Assembly (NCBI RefSeq): GCF_000737315.1
Contig: NZ_JMCB01000036.1
Coordinates: forward strand, 1-10,066
DNA from: Hyalangium minutum
Lineage (GTDB): Bacteria > Myxococcota > Myxococcia > Myxococcales > Myxococcaceae
DNA length: 10,066 bases
Direction of reading: 5' to 3'
Every line of letters starts with the position of its first letter. Positions within the stretch are counted from its first letter, which is position 1. Of the stretch, positions 1 through 10,066 are shown piece after piece. The position numbers were made by a program, and so were the translations under genes. The notes under the pieces were generated by a model. It did not search any database. It was not told where the DNA came from and saw only the letters and a list, made by a program, of their open reading frames with translations.

Positions 1-154
1 CTCACTCAGCAGGTAGAACACGGCACGGCCTACCTGCTCAATAGGGTTCTACTCCGGCTGCTCTCTCCCCAACCAAGTCCCTCCCGGTGAACGGTTACCG
101 CGGAATATGGAGCCTCTTGGTCATGGCTCCCGCGCGTCAGGAGCACAACAGAGA

Positions 155-340
155 TTACAGGACCGCCATGAGCAACGCTTCGGCCTCCACCATGACGACA
201 TGCTCCGTGTTCTCCCCCCAGGACAACGGGCTCCTCCTGCCACACCGGCAGCTGACGGGCACACTGGGGGCACATGCGGCCCAACAGGGGCAATCTGCTT
301 GGAGGCAAGCGGCCTGAGTTCCCCGGTCTCCCAGGGCTCA
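155..340 (-). pseudogene. Possible frameshifted remnant of a small hypothetical gene, divergent from the transposase
   Basis: Removing one G near position 280 and one from the G6 run (plus-strand C6 at 214-219) joins three frames into ...LASKQIAPVGRMCPQCARQLPVWQEEPVVLGENTEHVVMVEAEALLMAVL*, with TAA at 157..155. The product looks protein-like and has a CxxC, but no family was recognised and the reconstruction is manual. Confidence 0.2.
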
Positions 341-404
341 CGAGAACCCCGTGGGAGGCGGACAGGAGCGTGTGCCCTGGCAAGGTGTGGCAGGGGAGGA
401 GCGG

Positions 405-1312
405 GTGGAGGAGCGCGGGTGGGCGTACCGGCGGAGGCAGCCGGAGGGGACGGTGCTGTACGAGGCGGTGAGGGATAACCTGGCCACGCTGCTGGAAGAG
501 GCGAGCGAGGTGGGGCGCGGCCTGCCCCGGTACGTGGAGCGGGACGTAAGCCCGGTACCTGGAGTGCGGAGTGCTGGCGCACGGCTTCGCGCGGGTGCGC
601 TGCGAGAGTGGCAAGGACGAGTTTCTCGTCGCCTTCTGGTGCAAGGGACGAGGGGTGTACCCCTCCTGCAACGCGAAGCGGGCGCATGTGACGGCAGTGC
701 ATCTGGTGGAGCGGGTGCTGCCGCATGTGCCCTACCGGCAGTGGACGCGGTCCTTTCCGCATCGGGTGCGGTGGGTGCTGCTCAAGGACGTGGGGCCCCT
801 CTCGGACGTCCTCACCGTTTTCCTGCGCGCGGGGCACGCCCTGCTGCGGCGGAGGGCACGGCGGCAGAGCCTACGTGGCGGGCAGGTTGGGGCCGTGTCG
901 TTCATCCCGTTCTTCGGCTCCGCCTTGCAGGTGACTCCTCATTTCCACTCGCTGGTACCGGACGGCGTCTTCGTGCCGTGAGAGGGCGGCGTGCGCTTCG
1001 AGCCGTTGCCGCCGCCCACGCAAGCAGAGGTGGAGAAGTTGCTGAAGGGGGTGCGGCACCGGGTGCTGCAGCTGGTGGAGAACGGAGCGGATGAAGCAGA
1101 GGAGGCCGCGAGAGGACTTTTGCCGAGTAGCTGAGGAGGACGTTGGACTTCGACGTGTTGGCCTGCGTGAGGTGTGGAGGCAGGCTTAAGGGTGTTGGCG
1201 GGCCGTGAAGGGAGCACGAGGGGTGCGCGCGATTGTGAAGCACCTGGGCCTGGCCACAGCAGGTGCGAGGCGAGCCCCGGCGCGAGGGCCACCCCAGGCA
1301 GCGTGGTGTTGA
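405..1312 (+). pseudogene. IS91-family transposase pseudogene (zinc-binding domain plus HUH domain)
   Basis: GTG at 405 follows GGAGG. It reads [25 protein letters not shown], has a +1 frameshift at ~546-555, and continues [48 protein letters not shown] (HUH motif). There is a premature TGA at 979-981 and an internal deletion at ~1080. Frameshifted C-terminal pieces follow ([17 protein letters not shown]; ARGPPQAAWC*, stop 1310-1312). Confidence 0.88.
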
Positions 1313-1515
1313 GGCGCTCAAGACAACCCACAGGCCCAGCTCAGGCTCTTGCCGCGCCCTGATGGGAGGGGGGCCTGGGCAGCAGTGTGCCCTATGGGGT
1401 GCTCGGCCCCCTCCACGGGCCTGGCACACAGCTCGGGCGGCTCCCGTCCGCGGCCCTCCTCGGCCCCTGCGCTCCAGCCCTCTCCTTCAACCGGCCTCCC
1501 ATTTTTCTGATGCTC
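1079..1515 (+). repeat. Direct repeat copy 1 (437 bp), 3' end of the IS91-like element
   Basis: Aligned by eye to 8305..8742: identical except for one G indel (G4 vs G5 near 1396) and three substitutions (1443, 1473, 1483). Confidence 0.97.
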
Positions 1516-1538
1516 CCCCCAAGCCTGAGTTCGAAGCA

Positions 1539-4247
1539 CTACCGCGGAGGGGGCTGCAGTCCTTCTATCGGCCGGAGCTTCGATCTGGGAGGCAAGAGTT
1601 GCCGCAGTACGTCGGGGCGGGTGCTGGCGGCGAGGGTAAAGCGGGAGCGCCAGCCGTTTTCTCGGAGCTGGTCGAGCCACCGCAGCGCTTCGTGGGCGGA
1701 CAGGCCTCTCCGCATCAGGGCGAAGTAGAGGTGGGCATACTCGTCCGCCAGCGAGGTGGCGAAGGTCACCGGGTCATCCGAGTTGATGGAGACGAGCAGC
1801 GGAGGAGGGGCCTCGGGAGGGCGAGCGGCTGGGGCTGCTTCATGTGCCACGGGCAGGTGCGGCCCCAGCGCCATCGCGGGGTGGTGCTCCAGCCCGAGCA
1901 TGTTCAGGACGAGCAGGTTGCTGGAGGGGTTCGACTCGACAGTGATCTCCCGCTCACGCAGCAGGGACCGCAGCCAGGCCTGCGCCTCCGCAGCCATGGC
2001 GGTCTCGGCGGGGTGGTTATGCACCTCGACGAGGCGCTGGCCCCGGCGGAACACGCCTGCATCCGTCAGGTGCTGCCAGACGAGGCGCAGGACGCGATCC
2101 ATCCGGGCCCTGGGCTCGGGCTCGTCGGGGAAACGCAGGTACTCCAGCACCTGAGTGTCATGGCGATAGCGTCTGGCGAGGAGAAGGAGGTCGAGCTCGA
2201 CGCGCGAGAGGCCCAGCAACTCGCGCGCGAGGGCGGTGGCTTCGCTGCGCACGCGTTCGACTCGCGCGGGCTGGGTGGGCAGCTGGCCCTGGCCATAGCG
2301 ATCCAGCTCCCAAAGCAGATCGTCCAGGCGCTCTTCCGCGGGCTGGACAGCGACGGGGTGCAGCTCGGCCAGCCGTGGGGCGTCCGGGCCGAGTGCGAGC
2401 CCATGTCCGATGCGGTCCCCGGTCTGGAGGATTTCGGACTCGAGCAGCTCGTGGATCCGACGCAGGCCCTCCACGAGCCGGCGGAACTCCTCTCCCGCGT
2501 GGTAGGTGATGTGGAGTTCCGTCGCCTCCCATTGGGGGGCGAGCCGGCGCAGGCGCGAGGCTGTCGTCCGGGACTGACGCCGGACCTGTTGCAGGAGCGG
2601 TACGGTGACCCAGGTGGGCGTGGCGAGCTCGGCGCTGGCGACATCCAACCCTCGAACGACGAGCAGCAACTCGGGGTGATGACTGAGCGCGGTGCGGATG
2701 GCCAGGGCCTGCCTTCGTCGGCCCAGGAACCAATCGCCGAAGCGGAAGCCGGAGCTGTTACCGGAAGGATCCGCGTGGAGGCGTGCGTGCCCGCCACGGC
2801 CCTGGGAGAGTTCCCGCTCCTTGATGAAGTGGAAGAGCAGGGCGCTCTCCGGGCGCTCCGGAGCCGCCATGTGGGCCTGGGCGAGGTTGCGCGCTTGGTC
2901 ACGGATGGAGACCCAGTCCGGCTCGGGCGTCGCGCGCATTTCGAGGGAGCCGAGGTGCAGTCCTCGGCGCGTGTGCCGCAGAGCACTCTCGGCGAGGTGC
3001 TCTTCCAGGGGCCCCCGCAGGGCGGAGAGCCGGTTGAAGTGGACCTGGAACCAGTCGAGCCCCGCTGTCCCCGGCTCTTCGATGAGAAAGGCATGGGCCT
3101 GACAGCGGACGCGCTGGTACTGCCAGAAGAGGAGTGCGAAGCCTGAGTCTTCTTGGCCCTCTCGCAGCAGATAGCGAAGCGCGCGGGTGGTGAAGCGCGT
3201 CTCGGTGAAGGGACGCCCCTCGATGGAGGGCAGCCAGGCATGGAGCGGATCCTGCGCGAAGAGGGCCGACAGTGAGGAATCGCGGGCCTCCCGGCGCGAG
3301 CCAGTGGGAGGCGCGCCCGTCAGCGCTCGGTAGACCCGCTGGAGGACGCCGGGCGACGGCGAAGGATCCTGCCTGCGGCCGGAGGGGCGCTGGAGGTAAT
3401 CGAGGGCGTGCGAGTACTCACGCTGGAGCGCGGCGGCGCCAGAGGGCCAGGAAGCGAGGCGGGCAAGCCGGGGCCCTGTGCTCGCCAGGAAGGCGCGCAG
3501 GTCTCCGCGCTCTCCATGGAGTTCGCGTGCGCGCAAGAAGGCCGCGAGGAAGAGTCGGGCGATGGCCGCCGCGAGGAGCTTGGATGCAAAGCCCATCGCG
3601 TCGCCAAAGGGATACGTGTCCTTGGGCCGCAGCTTTTCGGGCCAGGCGTCGCGGAACCACCCCATCCAGACGCTCCAGAGGGTGGGAAAGGAGTAGGCGG
3701 CACCTCCATGGAGGTGGGTTTCGGAGACAGGCCGGCCGAGCACATCGCGCAGGTGGGAGGTGGGCAGATGCACCTCGTCCCCGGAGGGCTCGTCCTCGCT
3801 CGGCGCGTGGAGGCCGGCAATGAGTAGATCCGCAGGGACGCGGAGGGAGAGCCACCGCCAGTGGGCGGCGCGTTCAGCCCGTGTGATGCCGTCACCGGCG
3901 GGATCGGGCCTCAACTGAGGATGATGACCATCGCTCGCCAGATACCGCTCCGCGAGGCGGCGAAGGTACTCGGCGAGGGAGAGCCCCGATGCAATCGGAG
4001 GGCTTCCGGGCTCCACCGCGAACCATGAGTGCTCGCGCAGGGCCCGGAGCGCCTCCAGGGAGAGCCCCTCCGAGCGAGTGCGCAGGTGTGCCTCCAGGTC
4101 CGAGGCCAGCTTCTGGGTTGGCCCATCGAGGACTCCCGCGGCGGCGTGTCCCAGTTGGAGCGTTCGGTGAGCATGGGCGGACAGCGAGGCGAGAGGCCAG
4201 GCCTCGGCCTCCGCCACGAGCCGCTGGTAGCGCCCGTCCCGACCCAT
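1539..4247 (-). CDS. rdrB: Adenosine deaminase-fold (amidohydrolase) protein, RADAR RdrB-like, ~902 aa
   Basis: Complete set of ADA motifs: ETHLH (H178/H180), YHAGEE (H583/E586), RIGHG (H615), ESNPSSN and SINSDDP (D824/D825), with a ~400-aa insertion after HxH. The start was moved from 4343 to ATG 4247, which lies 1 nt after the upstream stop and has GGAG 7 nt upstream. The rdrB label rests on motifs, size and the neighbouring ATPase. Confidence 0.85.
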   Translation of the reverse strand: MGRDGRYQRLVAEAEAWPLASLSAHAHRTLQLGHAAAGVLDGPTQKLASDLEAHLRTRSEGLSLEALRALREHSWFAVEPGSPPIASGLSLAEYLRRLAERYLASDGHHPQLRPDPAGDGITRAERAAHWRWLSLRVPADLLIAGLHAPSEDEPSGDEVHLPTSHLRDVLGRPVSETHLHGGAAYSFPTLWSVWMGWFRDAWPEKLRPKDTYPFGDAMGFASKLLAAAIARLFLAAFLRARELHGERGDLRAFLASTGPRLARLASWPSGAAALQREYSHALDYLQRPSGRRQDPSPSPGVLQRVYRALTGAPPTGSRREARDSSLSALFAQDPLHAWLPSIEGRPFTETRFTTRALRYLLREGQEDSGFALLFWQYQRVRCQAHAFLIEEPGTAGLDWFQVHFNRLSALRGPLEEHLAESALRHTRRGLHLGSLEMRATPEPDWVSIRDQARNLAQAHMAAPERPESALLFHFIKERELSQGRGGHARLHADPSGNSSGFRFGDWFLGRRRQALAIRTALSHHPELLLVVRGLDVASAELATPTWVTVPLLQQVRRQSRTTASRLRRLAPQWEATELHITYHAGEEFRRLVEGLRRIHELLESEILQTGDRIGHGLALGPDAPRLAELHPVAVQPAEERLDDLLWELDRYGQGQLPTQPARVERVRSEATALARELLGLSRVELDLLLLARRYRHDTQVLEYLRFPDEPEPRARMDRVLRLVWQHLTDAGVFRRGQRLVEVHNHPAETAMAAEAQAWLRSLLREREITVESNPSSNLLVLNMLGLEHHPAMALGPHLPVAHEAAPAARPPEAPPPLLVSINSDDPVTFATSLADEYAHLYFALMRRGLSAHEALRWLDQLRENGWRSRFTLAASTRPDVLRQLLPPRSKLRPIEGLQPPPR

Positions 4248-4248
4248 G

Positions 4249-7200
4249 TCACTTCTCCGAGTTGGCCAAGCCCATATGCACGAGCCAGGGGTGCCGAGGC
4301 TCCTGGAACGCAGCATCAATCTCGTTGAGCATCTGCCGAGCATGCTCTGGTGAGTGCCCAGAGTCCGTCAGCCGAGCGAGCCGGTGTGCCTGCAGTGCCT
4401 GCGTGTCGATGCCGAAGTTCCGGTCCCACTGGGTGAGGATGAGGTCGGCAAACGTGACGGGCAAGCCAGACTCGGGCGCGGCGAGCAGGGGGAGTCGCGC
4501 GGCCCAGTCCCGGAGTTCCTTCGTCCGGGGCTCTTGTGTGGGAAGGGCCTTGAGCAGCGTGTGGAGCGACTCCACCTGCTGCACCCAGCGGTCTTGGGAG
4601 AAGGGTTCGCTGATGGGGGGGGCCAGATACGCACGGTGGAAGCACATGAGGGAGCCTTCGATCAGCCACAGGGCGCGTGGCACGAGCTGATCCGAGACAG
4701 GGAGTTCCCGGTTCATGTTCGGCTGCGCATGTCCCGACAGCCAGCTCTCTTCGAGTACCTCCCACTCCCACAGCGTCCGCCATGCGATGGTGGGGAAGAC
4801 CCAGAACTCACTCTTTTTCCAGGAGCCCTTGAGCAGGTGCCACCAGCGGGGAGCTGGAGAGGGGGACGCGGCGGCGTCGGGTTGCTCCATGGCGAGGTCA
4901 TGGGCCACACGCAAAAAAGGCTCGGCGTCATTGGGAACGCCCGCAACCAAGCCGGCTCCTGTTTGACGAACCTGGGTGAAAGCCAGGTAGAGATTCTCGG
5001 TGATGGCGGAGTCGCGCCATCGCGCTTTCGTGAAGGACTCGTCCACACTCTTACGGAAGCGCTCAATGAACGGGGTCTCTTGCAGGACCACCCGGCCCTC
5101 GCGGAGCTGGAGCTTGGGCTCGAGGTCGCGCCTATCCCTCTCGTGGGTCCAGGTCTTCCAGAGCAAGGACAGGACCTGCGCTGCCTCTGGGGGCTTGGGT
5201 GCGAGCCGGACCTTCTCGCTTAGAGTCTTCAACAGCCAGAGCGGACTGAGCGCGAGCAGGCCCTGTCGGAAATTCGTGAAGTAGGTCGCAAGGGATGCGA
5301 AGGGAGTTCGAACGGAGCGGAGTTCCTTGAGCAGGTTGTGGACTTCGGGTTCCCGTAGTCCGCTCGGAGCGCGGAATTCTCTCTGGATGCGCTGGATGAA
5401 GGGGTGTGTCTCGAAGGCATCGTCAAGCTTGCGGAGCAGGGTCTCCAGTTCGCCAGGACCGATGGTGGATGAGTTGTACAAAGGTGTCTGGGACAAGGCC
5501 TCCTGCAGGCGCCTGCGTCGCTCCCAGCGCAATCCATTCGTGATGTCGTTCCAGCTCGCGCTGAAGATCCCCTCCAGGCAGTTGATCAGTCCATCGCTGA
5601 AGAGGAGCGAAAGGCCGCTTTCCGGGGCAGCGAGCAGTCCGAGGTGTTGCACCCACGTGGATATGGCGTTGTCGCGAGCAGTGCCCGTCATCTCCCGAAG
5701 CGCTCCAAGTTCTCGCTCCAGCCAAGTCCAACTCTGCTTCTCACCCAGATGAACGCTCTCGACAGGCTGGCGACGCGAGACGTGGATGGCGAGTCGCAAG
5801 AACAGCCACGCGAAGTCATCCGGGCGGTGGGTGGGGGGGGCGGGCCATGAGGTCGGAGTGGGCGCGTCTTCCAGTTCCTGGCGCCAGGCCTGTATGAATT
5901 GGGTCAGCTCCTGGTGCGTTCCCCAGTCCGGCAAGGGCCAATGCACCATGAAGGCCGCAGCCAGATCGTCGATGCGCGCTTCCGATCCCGAGGATTGAGT
6001 GCGGGCAACGAGCGAGGACATCGCAGGGAAGGCGGAGAACAGTGTCTCGCGAGATTCCGGCTCTTTGGTAGGGATGCGCTTCCACCGGATACGGGTGAGC
6101 GCACGTTCCACTTCTCGGCTGCTGATGGTGGGACCCGTGGAGTGGCCGTGAGGAGCGGCGGTGCGGGCAAAGTCGTTCGCGAGTCCATATGCCACCACGA
6201 GTCCATCGGACAGCCAGGCCATTTCATCAATGCCGCGTGTCTCAGGGTTCCACTCCGGCATGTACATCCTTAGGCGCGTCGGGTAGCCCAGGGAGATCAA
6301 GAAGTCCTCACCGATGGACCAGGGCAGGAACTGGGTTTCCAATTCGGTGTTGAACTTCTGAGCGTCGACGTGGAGGGCTGCTTCCCCCGTCTCGGTCTCC
6401 TCCAACCAGATGAGGTTGCGGAGCAATGCCCTGTCGGAGCCACTGCGCTCCGAAGCTTCGACAGCAAGCTCCCAGAGCTTCATGAGGGCGCGGGCGGTTC
6501 GGGGAAATTCTGTCCCGCTGCTGGTGAGGAGCTCATTCAGTGTGGACTTCAAGGACACCAGGTCCCGGAGCCTGTCGGGGAGGACCTGCGCGAGGCCGAG
6601 AGACCCCTCCAGGAGCAGCTTGGAGTCGAGGAGGCCTGTACCTCCTGGCATCTTGAACTGCTTCAACTGCTCCTGAATAGGCTCGCTGCGAGGGAAGGAG
6701 AGCCTCCGGCGCACCGAGATGGGAGGCAGCTCACACCGCTGTGGCGGCGGAATGACCTTGTCGTAGATGGCCCTGGGAAGGTTCCTGAGGGTTTGGGGTA
6801 GCGACTGCTCGGGGATCCTCTCCCTACGCGAGAGGTCGAGCAGGAGCGAGTCCTCGAAGAGCGTACTATCGCCGGTCATGAGGAAGGCCAGTCGCGGGTG
6901 ATGGATCTTGCGCACCAGCGACAGCAACTCCGGCGTCCTTCGCGGGTTCATGTCCGCGTCATCAATGGCGAGCAGAAAGAGGGGGTAGTGGCCCTTGTCC
7001 CAGCGGCGCCAGCGTCGATAGTCATCCGCGAGCGCGTCGAGGAAGTCCCGGAAGGCTCCGGCCATCCGCATCCGATGCCGCTCCCCATGCTCGGCCTCCA
7101 GCGCATAGGCCTCGGGGTCGAGCCGAGTCTTTCGGATGTCCGGTCCATCCCAGCCCAGGGTCGTGACGCGGACGAACTCCCGCCACTTCTTGCGCGAGGG

Positions 7201-7722
7201 CTTCTCCTGAGCCTCTTCCCCTTGCCATGGCGCCGACGAGGAGGGGAGCGCCACGTCCTCCCCACCCTCCAGCGCGGCGACCACCCGCTCCAGGTGCCCG
7301 ACGAGGTGGAGAAGCAGGTTGGTGGTCTCGGGCAGGGGCTCGAGGTCGACCAGACCCACTGGCACGATGGGGTAGCCCGGCTCGATGTCCCAGGATTCGG
7401 GCCGGAAGTCGCGCAGAGTCTTCACCTTGTTCGTCGCGGCCTTGTTGTAAAGGTTCAACAAGGTGACGAGCAGGGCGGACTTCCCAGAGCCCCGGCGCCC
7501 ATCAATGAGGACCGTGGGGTTGAGGCGCTTCTTCTCGATGAGAGGCAGATAACCGTGGGCCCTGCTGCCCTTGGCGGGGGAGAAGGGCGCCTCGGCTAAC
7601 TCGCGGAGGAAGCCGGTGGCACGCGTCCCCGCCTTGAGCTGATCTTCGGTGAGCTCCTTGGGCAGCAGGATGCGTGCTTCGGTGCGTGGCTGGAAGGGAG
7701 ACTTGGGGTTCGTGTTGGACAT
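4249..7722 (-). CDS. rdrA: Large P-loop ATPase, RADAR RdrA-like, 1157 aa
   Basis: Walker A in VLIDGRRGSGKS, Walker B in FLLAIDDAD, then FLMTGD and YDKVIPP..R motifs and a long helical C-terminal region. The ORF is uninterrupted and sits directly upstream of the deaminase. No clear RBS precedes ATG 7722. Confidence 0.82.
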   Translation of the reverse strand: MSNTNPKSPFQPRTEARILLPKELTEDQLKAGTRATGFLRELAEAPFSPAKGSRAHGYLPLIEKKRLNPTVLIDGRRGSGKSALLVTLLNLYNKAATNKVKTLRDFRPESWDIEPGYPIVPVGLVDLEPLPETTNLLLHLVGHLERVVAALEGGEDVALPSSSAPWQGEEAQEKPSRKKWREFVRVTTLGWDGPDIRKTRLDPEAYALEAEHGERHRMRMAGAFRDFLDALADDYRRWRRWDKGHYPLFLLAIDDADMNPRRTPELLSLVRKIHHPRLAFLMTGDSTLFEDSLLLDLSRRERIPEQSLPQTLRNLPRAIYDKVIPPPQRCELPPISVRRRLSFPRSEPIQEQLKQFKMPGGTGLLDSKLLLEGSLGLAQVLPDRLRDLVSLKSTLNELLTSSGTEFPRTARALMKLWELAVEASERSGSDRALLRNLIWLEETETGEAALHVDAQKFNTELETQFLPWSIGEDFLISLGYPTRLRMYMPEWNPETRGIDEMAWLSDGLVVAYGLANDFARTAAPHGHSTGPTISSREVERALTRIRWKRIPTKEPESRETLFSAFPAMSSLVARTQSSGSEARIDDLAAAFMVHWPLPDWGTHQELTQFIQAWRQELEDAPTPTSWPAPPTHRPDDFAWLFLRLAIHVSRRQPVESVHLGEKQSWTWLERELGALREMTGTARDNAISTWVQHLGLLAAPESGLSLLFSDGLINCLEGIFSASWNDITNGLRWERRRRLQEALSQTPLYNSSTIGPGELETLLRKLDDAFETHPFIQRIQREFRAPSGLREPEVHNLLKELRSVRTPFASLATYFTNFRQGLLALSPLWLLKTLSEKVRLAPKPPEAAQVLSLLWKTWTHERDRRDLEPKLQLREGRVVLQETPFIERFRKSVDESFTKARWRDSAITENLYLAFTQVRQTGAGLVAGVPNDAEPFLRVAHDLAMEQPDAAASPSPAPRWWHLLKGSWKKSEFWVFPTIAWRTLWEWEVLEESWLSGHAQPNMNRELPVSDQLVPRALWLIEGSLMCFHRAYLAPPISEPFSQDRWVQQVESLHTLLKALPTQEPRTKELRDWAARLPLLAAPESGLPVTFADLILTQWDRNFGIDTQALQAHRLARLTDSGHSPEHARQMLNEIDAAFQEPRHPWLVHMGLANSEK
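4255..4258 (-). promoter_or_regulatory. Shine-Dalgarno site for the deaminase, embedded in the last codons of the ATPase
   Basis: Minus strand reads ...tcGGAGaagTGAcATG: stop, 1 nt, start. This suggests translational coupling. Confidence 0.65.
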
Positions 7723-7849
7723 GGCCCGGGTCGGTCAGACAGCACGGGCACGGACTGAAGCCGTGCTCTAGGTGTGGCGTGGCCCGGATTCTGGGCGCAG
7801 GCGAGCAGGGGCGGAAGTTTCTGGTGGGCGCGGTGGGTGACACTGGAAC

Positions 7850-8071
7850 TCAGTAGCCGGGCGGCACCTCGTTCCCGCTAAGCCGTGCGAAGCCGTGCGC
7901 CAGCACCCCGCACTCCAGGTACCCGGCGAAGTCCCGCTCCATATACCGGGGCAGGCCTCTTCCCACCTCGTTCGCCTCCGCTAGCAGCGTGGTGAGGTTG
8001 TCCCTCACCGCCTCGTACAGCACCGGCCCCTCCGGCTGCCTCCTCCGGTACGCCCACCAGCGCTCCTCCAC
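7850..8071 (-). pseudogene. 5' fragment of a second IS91-family transposase, inverted relative to the left copy
   Basis: GTG at 8071 follows GGAGG and reads [62 protein letters not shown]. Homology stops at ~7884 and the frame closes at TGA 7852..7850. About 89% identical to 405..593 (about 20 differences in ~188 nt, counted by hand). Confidence 0.9.
7880..7899. repeat. Perfect 10-bp tandem duplication (aagccgtgcg x2) at the truncation point of the inverted transposase fragment
   Basis: 7880-7889 is identical to 7890-7899. Confidence 0.85.
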
Positions 8072-8136
8072 CTGCCCCTCCCCAGCTACACCTGTGCTCC
8101 CACGAACCTCCCTGGAGCACCGTGCGCCCCTGGTTC

Positions 8137-8188
8137 TGTCTCCAAAATGTCTCCAGGATTGGAGGGGACTCGGAGGGACAGGTGGGAC
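8137..8188. repeat. Helically phased short direct repeats
   Basis: tgtctcca at 8137-8144 and 8148-8155 (11-bp period); gggac at 8165, 8175 and 8184 (10- and 9-bp spacing). Confidence 0.6.
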
Positions 8189-8256
8189 TGCCGGGGATTC
8201 CCCCGTGGACTCGAAGTGCCCGGATTCACTCGCGATTCCTCGAAAGGCGTGTGCTC

Positions 8257-8742
8257 CCCCAAGCAGGAGAGGAGGAGGCGAGAGAGGGGAAGGAGGCAGC
8301 GGGCAGAACGGAGCGGATGAAGCAGAGGAGGCCGCGAGAGGACTTTTGCCGAGTAGCTGAGGAGGACGTTGGACTTCGACGTGTTGGCCTGCGTGAGGTG
8401 TGGAGGCAGGCTTAAGGGTGTTGGCGGGCCGTGAAGGGAGCACGAGGGGTGCGCGCGATTGTGAAGCACCTGGGCCTGGCCACAGCAGGTGCGAGGCGAG
8501 CCCCGGCGCGAGGGCCACCCCAGGCAGCGTGGTGTTGAGGCGCTCAAGACAACCCACAGGCCCAGCTCAGGCTCTTGCCGCGCCCTGATGGGAGGGGGGC
8601 CTGGGCAGCAGTGTGCCCTATGGGGGTGCTCGGCCCCCTCCACGGGCCTGGCACACAGCTCGGGCGGCTTCCGTCCGCGGCCCTCCTCGGCCCCTGCGCC
8701 CCAGCCCTCACCTTCAACCGGCCTCCCATTTTTCTGATGCTC
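8257..8742 (+). mobile_element. 3' remnant of the IS91-like element, right copy
   Basis: Reads [18 protein letters not shown] / [17 protein letters not shown] / VKGARGVRAIVKHLGLATAGARRAPARGPPQAAWC* (stop 8536-8538) across three +1 frameshifts and a TAG at 8354-8356, then the same noncoding end as the left copy. It keeps ~48 bp more transposase-like sequence (8257-8304) than the left copy. Confidence 0.85.
8305..8742 (+). repeat. Direct repeat copy 2 (438 bp)
   Basis: About 99% identical to 1079..1515; offset 7226-7227 bp. Confidence 0.97.
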
Positions 8743-8810
8743 ACGTGGCCTTGTACGCCCAGCAGATGGAGGACGGGTCGGCCCAGTGGCGGAAGAAGCT
8801 CGGCCTCTGA
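8742..8810 (+). pseudogene. 3' tail of a gene truncated at the IS end (HVALYAQQMEDGSAQWRKKLGL*)
   Basis: Starts exactly at the repeat boundary. All 22 codons end in G or C. The TGA at 8808-8810 converges on the monooxygenase stop with a 27-bp gap. Confidence 0.6.
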
Positions 8811-8837
8811 GCACGCCTCACGGGGACGTTCCAGCGC

Positions 8838-10064
8838 CTACGGCACCATCCCCTCCAGGGCACTCTGCATGATCGCATCATGCCCGTAGTCAGGAAGGTG
8901 GATCCTGTCTGCGGGCGGCGATAGCAGCTTGCCCGCAAGCCTGCTCAAGCCGGGTTTTGTCGCGAGGCTGAGCGCGGCCTGCTGAAGCGCGATACCGGTG
9001 CGAGTCTGCGGCTGGGCAATGCGCGGGCCGAGCTTGGGCACGTCCTGCGCCTGATCCACGTAGGGCCGCATGATCCGCTCGTAGGCGGCGAAGGCTTCGG
9101 CATGATCCTCGTGTCGGCCAAGCTCGCCGGCGAGCACATAGGCACCGACAAGGGCCAAGCTGGTCCCCATGCCGCTAATGGGGGAGGCGCACCAGGCAGC
9201 ATCGCCGGTCAGGACGACGCGGCCGATGGACCACCGATCCATCTTCACCTGGCCAATCGCCTCGAAGTAGAAGTCCCTCGCATCGTCGAGGCCGGCGAGT
9301 ACGCGCGGTGTTTCCCAGCCCGCGTCGGCGAACTTCTCCTTCAGCATCGCCTTCTGCTCGTCGCGGGACAGATCCTCGTAGCCCACGGGCTTCTCTTGCA
9401 GCCCCAGAAGGGCGCGCGTGGTGCCGACATGGTCTGGGCGCAAGAAGACGCTGCGCCCTCCCGGCGCGTTGAACCAGCGGGCGACCTTCCCGTCGTTTGA
9501 GCCCTTCGGGATTGTGAAGTAGGCCGTATAGAGGTCGAGCGGTCGGCGTTTCACCGCGTCTCCGAACGCCAGCTTTCGCGTCGACGAGCCGATTCCCTCG
9601 GCGGCGATGACGAGGTCGAAGCGGCGGGTGCCGCCCTTGTCGAACGTGACTTCGACCCTGTCGCCCTTGTCGTCCAGCACGGTGATGCGATCGCCGAAGA
9701 TATATTCAGCGCGGTCGTGGCTGTGCTCAACGAGCAACCGCGCAAGCTCGCCGCGGAGGATCTCAAGCTCCGCGGTCGGTCCGTTGCCACCGAACTGCGC
9801 CGCGTCGAACTCGGCCTTGACCCTGTTCTCCTCGTCCACGAAAGCGATCGCCACCTCACCCGTTGACCGCTGCCGCACCTCATCCTCGAGCCCCATGCGC
9901 CGGATCACCTCCCGGCCCGCGCCACGGACGTCAATGTTCTGCCCACCGTCGCGGAACTCAGGTGCGCGTTCGACCACCGTGACGCTCATGCCAAAGCGGG
10001 TGAGCCACCAGGCCAGCGTGGGCCCCGCGATGCTCGCCCCAGTCACCAAGACATGCCGCTTCAT
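8838..10064 (-). CDS. FAD-dependent monooxygenase/oxidoreductase (UbiH / FAD_binding_3-like), 408 aa
   Basis: N-terminal VLVTGASIAG dinucleotide-binding motif, DLVIAAEGIGS (variant of the DG motif) and RVVLTGDAAWCASPISGMGTSLA (GD motif). The start is 2 nt from the window edge, so the upstream context is not visible. Confidence 0.92.
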   Translation of the reverse strand: MKRHVLVTGASIAGPTLAWWLTRFGMSVTVVERAPEFRDGGQNIDVRGAGREVIRRMGLEDEVRQRSTGEVAIAFVDEENRVKAEFDAAQFGGNGPTAELEILRGELARLLVEHSHDRAEYIFGDRITVLDDKGDRVEVTFDKGGTRRFDLVIAAEGIGSSTRKLAFGDAVKRRPLDLYTAYFTIPKGSNDGKVARWFNAPGGRSVFLRPDHVGTTRALLGLQEKPVGYEDLSRDEQKAMLKEKFADAGWETPRVLAGLDDARDFYFEAIGQVKMDRWSIGRVVLTGDAAWCASPISGMGTSLALVGAYVLAGELGRHEDHAEAFAAYERIMRPYVDQAQDVPKLGPRIAQPQTRTGIALQQAALSLATKPGLSRLAGKLLSPPADRIHLPDYGHDAIMQSALEGMVP

Positions 10065-10066
10065 CG

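Follow-up and report, generated by a model that had tools for sequence, protein, structure and literature searches.

At the center of a 10,066-nucleotide (nt) stretch of Hyalangium minutum DNA (contig NZ_JMCB01000036.1, assembly GCF_000737315.1, positions 1 to 10,066; hereafter the window, i.e., the whole stretch analyzed), two long open reading frames (ORFs) lie on the minus strand, gene A and, directly downstream of it, gene B. The former specifies a putative ATPase distantly related to RdrA and the latter a protein resembling RdrB, the adenosine deaminase with which RdrA is paired in RADAR (phage restriction by an adenosine deaminase acting on RNA). The region behind the ATPase domain of gene A consists of two homologous modules that go back to a real and old duplication. 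Sequence comparisons identify the locus as a putative divergent RADAR-type two-gene system, i.e., a RADAR variant with a new domain family. The two genes and their parts are laid out as follows.

4249..7722, minus strand: gene A, RdrA-like AAA+ ATPase of 1157 amino acids (aa), with an ATPase domain and two paralogous modules (ORF listing)
6688..7722, minus strand: ATPase domain, aa 1-345 (hhalign against canonical RdrA, invariance in the family, Foldseek)
7477-7500, minus strand: Walker A motif GRRGSGKS, within the ATPase domain of gene A
6949-6969, minus strand: Walker B motif AIDDADM, within the ATPase domain of gene A
6865-6882, minus strand: sensor-1 region LMTGDS, within the ATPase domain of gene A
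5368..6687, minus strand: module 1 (position-1 type), aa 346-785 (hhalign against module 2; own clade in the module tree)
5923-5940, minus strand: WPLPDW in module 1
5611..5637, minus strand: LLAAPESGL copy 1, aa 696-704, in module 1 (E701 invariant)
5344..5367, minus strand: inter-module linker, aa 786-793, overlapping a segment of very low model confidence (aa 782-787; predicted local distance difference test [pLDDT] <50)
4252..5343, minus strand: module 2 (position-2 type), aa 794-1157 (hhalign; clusters with effector-fused modules)
4780-4797, minus strand: FPTIAW in module 2
4462..4488, minus strand: LLAAPESGL copy 2, aa 1079-1087, in module 2 (E1084 invariant)
1539..4247, minus strand: gene B, RdrB-like adenosine deaminase of 902 aa from the ATG at 4247 (PADLOC, PDB and NCBIfam matches)
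3702-3719, minus strand: deaminase motif THLHGG of gene B
2487-2504, minus strand: deaminase motif YHAGEE of gene B
2394-2411, minus strand: deaminase motif IGHGLA of gene B
1770-1790, minus strand: deaminase motif SINSDDP of gene B

Gene A has its nearest relatives, equal to it in length, among hypothetical proteins, one from Corallococcus sp. AB049A (91% identity; likewise 1157 aa) and one from Hyalangium rubrum (82%). Its AlphaFold model has a mean pLDDT of 81.9, with a low-confidence insert at aa 550-577 of module 1. R386, also in module 1, is invariant across the family and may be the sensor-2 arginine of AAA+ proteins. The program-listed ORF of gene B starts at 4343, with a 95-nt overlap with gene A. 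Homologs align only from Met33 of this longer ORF, and the junction reads GAGAAG TGA C ATG GGT, placing an ATG 1 nt past the stop codon of gene A (4245-4251). Therefore, gene B is assigned to 1539-4247, and the listed start is probably not the real one. The TGAcATG arrangement of stop and start suggests that the two genes are translationally coupled.

A preliminary description of this DNA had pointed out that LLAAPESGL occurs at both aa 696-704 and aa 1079-1087 with differing codons, and had proposed an ancient duplication of a C-terminal module. The two copies differ at 6 of 9 codons and 9 of 27 nt. Upon shuffling the gene A protein 2000 times, the longest exact repeat was 7 residues (none of at least 8), and the number of identical 9-mer pairs expected in the protein is 2.9e-5. 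BLASTP of aa 341-800 against aa 801-1157 returned one significant high-scoring segment pair (aa 679-776 versus 1062-1147, 29% identity, E=3e-6), i.e., single-sequence comparison reveals similarity for the last quarter of each module only. Similarity along the whole modules became evident at the family level. When column blocks aa 345-790 and 791-1156 of an alignment of 51 full-length members were compared by hhalign, aa 346-785 matched aa 794-1156 with 99.9% probability (E=3.4e-31) over 354 columns. Each of the five pairs of collinear blocks listed in the preliminary description is aligned in this comparison (ALMKLWELA/VLSLLWKTW, AYGLANDFA/FLRVAHDLA, WPLPDWGT/FPTIAWRT, the LLAAPESGL blocks, and LRKLDDAFETHPF/LNEIDAAFQEPRHPW), and moving the split point still yielded E=3e-18 to 4e-29. 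The ATPase domain matched either module at E=0.2-0.4 only; therefore, composition cannot account for the match between modules.

Conservation of at least 70% in both modules is seen at 24 positions, and every one of them has an identical residue in the two copies; this jointly conserved set includes six tryptophans, A-A-P-E-x-G-L, R735/R1114, R738/R1117, D767/D1136 and H773/H1144. In the AlphaFold model, 74% of the aligned positions have matching secondary structure, versus 37-52% in shifted registers. Modules 1 and 2 are 17.5% identical and have no similarity at the DNA level, the only DNA repeats of the window being those of its flanks. Thus, the duplication is neither recent nor an assembly artifact. 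The two have similar values of mean pairwise identity across the family (module 1, 0.24; module 2, 0.23), pointing to equal constraint on both, and the two copies are kept in dozens of independent genomes. Together with the module tree described below, the family-level match, its controls and the secondary structure establish the ancient duplication that had been proposed.

The preliminary assignment of gene A as an RdrA-like ATPase also stands, in the sense of a distant relative, on profile, PDB and Foldseek matches and on its RdrB-like neighbor. The ATPase domain (aa 1-340) aligned to a canonical RdrA alignment, built from Pantoea, Rhizobium and Bacillus cereus plasmid genes plus more from a protein search, with an hhalign probability of 98.8% (E=4e-17), and a hidden Markov model (HMM) of this domain matches canonical RdrAs at 1e-15 to 9e-23. 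The best PDB matches of the family profile are RdrA chains 8hr7 and 8fnt, with coverage of Walker A, Walker B and the TGD of sensor-1; G75, G78, G80, K81, D254, D255, D257 and G284 are invariant in the 51-member family. Foldseek searches of the PDB with the full-length model of gene A placed RdrA in all 16 best matches (E=1.5e-7 to 1.4e-4). Template modeling scores against RdrA chains are 0.17-0.35, i.e., only a fraction of each structure superposes, presumably the ATPase domain, as the output carries no aligned ranges. RdrA-specific insertions have been described as a 'crown' between beta2 and beta3 and as three helices between beta4 and beta5 (PMC9994260). In the model of gene A, strands 119-126 and 248-254 are separated by four predicted helices, and strands 278-284 and 329-332 by three, so that helical insertions are predicted at the positions of both. 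Single-sequence searches with gene A were uninformative (no PDB match by phmmer, a weak AAA_16 match only in Pfam, nothing in PADLOC), and RdrA was reached through the family profile only.

Gene B matches RdrB in PADLOC (8e-22) and NCBIfam (7e-29), as well as RdrB chains 8fnw/8fnv of the PDB (E=3.5e-18 over aa 538-902), and carries all four deaminase motifs (HxH, HAGE, H, DD). A deaminase gene lies directly downstream of gene A homologs at 33 of 41 loci from species-representative genomes; at the other eight, the contig or the fetched flank mostly ends just past gene A. This arrangement holds for ATPases with one, two or three modules alike.

The repeat is not a feature of described RdrA proteins as far as this can be tested, in keeping with the preliminary claim of a new architecture. 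Canonical RdrA ends in a single alpha-helical C-terminal lobe without known homologs, a possible sensor according to PMC9994260. When the RdrAs of Pantoea, Rhizobium and B. cereus (the latter of 1178 aa) were each compared with themselves by BLAST, no self-similarity emerged, and hhalign of canonical C-terminal halves at five split points detected no repeat (E=0.4-0.7). A cryptic repeat in canonical RdrA is rejected on these grounds, with the proviso that the canonical alignment is shallow (effective number of sequences, 2.8) and a very old repeat could escape detection. The modules do not correspond to the canonical lobe either: their profiles failed to match canonical RdrAs by hhalign or hmmsearch --max (E about 0.7 or worse), and Foldseek was likewise negative. 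No myxobacterial genus is named in the supplementary tables of the RADAR structure paper, which is weak evidence since the tables are possibly incomplete. As to the B. cereus protein (plasmid NZ_CP125990.1; locus L003, 5311-8847), its 1178 aa exceed the length of the E. coli type by ~230 aa, and it shows neither a BLAST self-repeat nor a module HMM match.

Each module spans ~370-440 residues and is rich in tryptophan (3.6% and 4.6%, versus 1.7% in the ATPase domain). The preliminary picture of a helical, W-rich module is correct in the second attribute and not in the first, the modeled fold being alpha/beta. When modeled alone, module 2 is a confident compact domain (pLDDT 87.3; predicted template modeling score 0.88). 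Foldseek retrieved no match to this lone model in the PDB (best E=2, RdrA not among the matches) or among viral structures, and the Pfam copy searched holds no model for the module. It is thus a domain family new to Pfam and without counterpart among solved structures. No paper describing the module family, or the repetition of a module in RdrA, was found in a literature search.

An exhaustive search with the module-2 profile collected 407 clusters (50% identity) at E≤1e-3, the best 150 of which are mostly proteins of 1050-1230 aa with two matched stretches. The order ATPase-module 1-module 2 was found in 124 of 179 fetched proteins, and this two-module form is the majority in a mostly myxobacterial clade. 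Nearly all of the 41 species-representative loci are from Myxococcota (Archangium, Myxococcus, Pyxidicoccus, Corallococcus, Hyalangium, Sorangium, Polyangiaceae, Nannocystaceae, Kofleriaceae and Sandaracinaceae), and two are from Thermoanaerobaculia. One-module proteins of ~730-800 aa occupy five of these loci; they are not truncated gene calls, because the deaminase gene follows within 12-26 nt. Their lone module is of the position-1 type (1e-61 to 1e-87 with the module-1 HMM versus 1e-15 to 1e-31 with the module-2 HMM). Three-module proteins of ~1450-1480 aa also have the deaminase gene downstream. Across these architectures, the position-1 type always stands directly behind the ATPase, and the position-2 type is absent, single or doubled.

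Phylogenies were built for both parts of the protein. The three-module proteins are monophyletic in the ATPase-domain tree, where one-module proteins are scattered among two-module ones, and a tree of 121 modules splits most deeply between the position-1 and the position-2 type. Modules 2 and 3 of the three-module protein P0257 are 24% identical (E=5e-11). The two trees favor a two-module ancestor, after which module 2 was lost repeatedly and one more duplication took place, and the initial duplication appears to be older than the radiation of the clade. A one-module ancestor is not favored, given the scatter of such proteins in a midpoint-rooted neighbor-joining tree without support values. 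Several myxobacterial genomes harbor two or three paralogous RdrA-like loci (L048 and L049 on JAAFIF010000055.1; L033, L042 and L045 in one metagenome-assembled genome [MAG]; L021 and L041 in another), and one myxobacterial genome holds one-module and two-module versions together. Among individual members, a 46% identical homolog of 1099 aa (P0003) has a divergent C-terminal tail with no match to an AAPESG-like pattern, which may stem from a frameshift, and a 710-aa one-module protein (P0050; L007, 7001-9133) has no adjoining intact deaminase gene, its locus possibly decaying.

The module is not confined to RdrA-like proteins. In several hits of 490-700 aa, a single copy makes up the C-terminal part and the N-terminal domain is of another kind; the fusion partners confirmed by Pfam are TIR_2 (twice, once also with SEFIR), EAD5, HNH, PNP_UDP_1, Pkinase and GGDEF. 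AAPESGL is kept in six of the seven effector fusions, ~70 residues from the C-terminus, P0282 being the one without it. All seven modules resemble module 2 more than module 1, with 136-177 bits on the profile of the former and 38-72 bits on that of the latter, and form one clade within the position-2 type. The three effector-module genes that were looked up are stand-alone, none adjoining an RdrA-like gene. A domain coupled in this way to many different effectors and to an NTPase (nucleoside triphosphatase) behaves like a conflict-system unit with a sensor, regulatory or adaptor role. The HNH-module gene (L053, 114-11303) sits in a defense-island-like run with GmrSD_N, HEPN_RiboL-PSP, HNH_5 and a 1597-aa EAD1-trypsin protein. 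In a Polyangium MAG (prefix CAZETM01), an RdrA-like/RdrB-like locus (L022) coexists with a stand-alone TIR/SEFIR-module gene (L052).

Comparison with known systems places gene A closest to RdrA of E. coli and Streptococcus suis (8FNT, 8FNU, 8HR7-8HRB; NF041743). Both share an AAA+ core with Walker A, Walker B and sensor-1, insertions at both RdrA-specific positions in the model, a large non-ATPase C-terminal region and a gene immediately upstream of that of an RdrB-type deaminase, and RdrA is the best structural and profile match. However, only the ATPase domain of gene A is detectably related to RdrA, and its C-terminal region is made of two alpha/beta, tryptophan-rich modules (one to three in the clade) rather than a single alpha-helical lobe, canonical RdrA being devoid of an internal repeat. 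Gene B likewise resembles RdrB (8FNV, 8FNW; NF041744) in its HxH/HAGE/H/DD motifs, its length of ~900 aa and its place in the gene order, but its N-terminal half is not detectably similar, its score is far under the cutoff, and dodecamer formation and ATP-to-ITP activity are putative for it. In STAND/NLR-like NTPases (Avs), the C-terminal domains are thought to recognize the invader and are shuffled between systems. Gene A is similar to these defense proteins in combining an N-terminal NTPase with large, shuffled, putative recognition domains at the C-terminus, but its ATPase is of the RdrA type and its effector is a separate deaminase, not a fused N-terminal domain. STAND models gave no significant match to gene A, the only hits being nSTAND_NTPase5 (E=0.15) and Avs5 (E=0.38). 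Effector-associated domains (Kaur et al. 2020, PMC7159879) offer a further parallel, i.e., a domain common to an NTPase and diverse effectors (TIR, HNH, PNP, kinase) and enriched in myxobacteria, one module fusion partner being EAD5 itself. They differ from the module, which is ~370 aa long, C-terminal, present in tandem copies and without a Pfam model. The text of PMC7159879 does not contain the term 'adenosine deaminase'.

How the second module came about, and whether it is a true copy at all, can be weighed on this evidence. A resemblance due to chance, to the composition of a GC-rich protein abundant in tryptophan, leucine, alanine and arginine, or to faulty assembly would accord with a G+C content of 62-70% in the window and with the ~100 residues that single-sequence BLAST aligns, but is refuted to the point of negligible probability by the 354-column profile match at E=3.4e-31 against E=0.2-0.4 for controls of the same composition, the 2000 shuffles without an exact repeat of 8, the retention of both copies in dozens of independent genomes and the lack of a DNA-level repeat. 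Accretion is a more serious contender: a pre-existing paralogous module of the TIR/HNH/PNP type would have been fused to a one-module ATPase, leaving the homology intact and changing the event. One-module ATPases paired with a deaminase do exist, and the deepest split in the module tree leaves position-2 modules together with all seven effector-fused ones. The latter score higher on the module-2 profile (136-177 versus 38-72 bits). We nonetheless judge this origin improbable, since the effector-fused modules are monophyletic and nested within the position-2 type, which fits export at least as well as import, the scatter of one-module ATPases among two-module proteins suggests secondary loss, and the similarity between modules 2 and 3 of three-module proteins (24%, E=5e-11) indicates that tandem duplication does occur in this family. 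With the module-2 subtype also found on unrelated effectors, in situ tandem duplication is therefore the simplest, not the only possible, origin of the second module.

The function of the repeated unit invites another alternative, namely that it is a homotypic adaptor or oligomerization domain through which effector-module proteins (TIR, HNH, PNP, kinase) are recruited to module layers of the ATPase ring, the second module adding docking sites. Its occurrence on an NTPase and on unrelated effector proteins, one of them with EAD5, the coexistence of L022 and L052 in the MAG CAZETM01, and a surface-type signature that is identical in both copies would all agree with such a role. Described effector-associated domains are, however, small (135 positions in the Pfam EAD5 model) and reportedly usually N-terminal, as opposed to a C-terminal module of ~370 aa; the examined effector-module genes do not adjoin RdrA-like genes, and the system already has a dedicated effector in the deaminase. 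An adaptor function thus seems unlikely to us.

The interpretation that we favor overall, and consider fairly probable, is that of a divergent RADAR-type pair in which two paralogous, tryptophan-rich alpha/beta modules stand in place of the canonical lobe and would perceive infection. In E. coli RADAR, RdrA assembles into a heptameric ring of two layers, which docks on a dodecamer of RdrB (PMC9994260). By analogy, the ATPase of gene A would probably form a ring and probably dock on the deaminase via a helical insertion in the ATPase domain, the modules making up one or more distal layers of the ring that perceive infection. They would then license the ATPase, upon which gene B would convert (d)ATP to (d)ITP and phage replication would stop. 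Module 1 would act as a fixed coupling layer and module 2 as a portable unit for sensing or regulation, with a copy number that would tune what is recognized. The second module may thus amount to the doubled sensor or extra ring layer envisaged in the preliminary description, and the module is a good candidate for the sensing part of such systems. More tentatively, we entertain the possibility that myxobacterial immunity makes use of a portable domain not described before, namely this repeated unit, which would sense infection or bind a ligand and bears the signature W...LLAAPESGL...R..R...D.....H. It would be deployed behind TIR, HNH, PNP or kinase domains or stacked in one to three layers on a RADAR-type ring, where the number of copies would set how many signals are read.

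Several observations weigh against this interpretation. Gene A reaches 24.3 bits on NCBIfam NF041743 (cutoff, 600), in the P-loop region only, and has no PADLOC match; gene B reaches 101 bits on NF041744 (cutoff, 800). Since neither protein passes its curated NCBIfam model and gene A escapes PADLOC, function is extrapolated from distant relatives, and with both proteins far under the NCBI cutoffs the locus encodes a distant RADAR-like pair that falls outside RADAR as curated. No relation between the module and the canonical C-terminal lobe could be detected; therefore, the sensor role of that lobe, itself a proposal, does not transfer automatically. The conserved E, R, R, D and H set could equally be a fold-stabilizing network, an interface or a ligand site, and the AAPESG motif is lost from all modules of the three-module clade (P0257, P0261, P0266, P0280 and P0289), which the profiles still match. 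On the historical side, both trees are neighbor-joining trees without support values, that of the ATPase being midpoint rooted, and sampling is biased to proteins matching module 2.

If the modules do perceive infection, they would provide the first tractable handle on phage detection by RADAR-type systems. The C-terminal lobe of RdrA has been proposed as the infection sensor of RADAR (PMC9994260), and the corresponding region is here a discrete domain, whose duplication and export to unrelated effectors is the behavior expected of a sensor or regulatory unit. Beyond this proposal, our analysis defines a domain family absent from Pfam and lacking a solved-structure counterpart, and delineates a sizeable, mostly myxobacterial RADAR-like branch that is missed by the PADLOC RdrA models and falls below the curated NCBI cutoffs.

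The surroundings of the operon are repetitive. A near-identical direct repeat of ~437 nt lies on either side of it.

1079..1515, no strand assigned: left copy of the direct repeat bracketing the operon
8305..8742, no strand assigned: right copy of the same direct repeat

The two copies, spaced 7226 nt apart, are made up of a stretch at 100% identity (1079-1378 and 8305-8604) and another at 98% (1396-1515 and 8623-8742). Farther out lie inverted repeats of 163 nt (88%) and 45 nt (93%), in regions 383-594 and 7883-8093. These bracketing repeats suggest that the operon may be located in, or have been delivered by, a mobile or recombining element. A truncated IS91-family transposase is encoded at 571-981 on the plus strand (matches to Zn_Tnp_IS91 and to the first 28 positions of Y2_Tnp), and an N-terminal fragment of a similar transposase gene lies inverted on the opposite side of the operon (~7883-8093, minus strand). 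Long ORFs antisense to genes A and B (e.g., 1263-3146 on the plus strand; up to 627 aa) have no Pfam match and are the usual by-product of high G+C content. The right end of the window (8838-10064, minus strand) encodes an FAD-dependent monooxygenase-type protein (FAD_binding_3, E=1e-18), which is unrelated to the modules.

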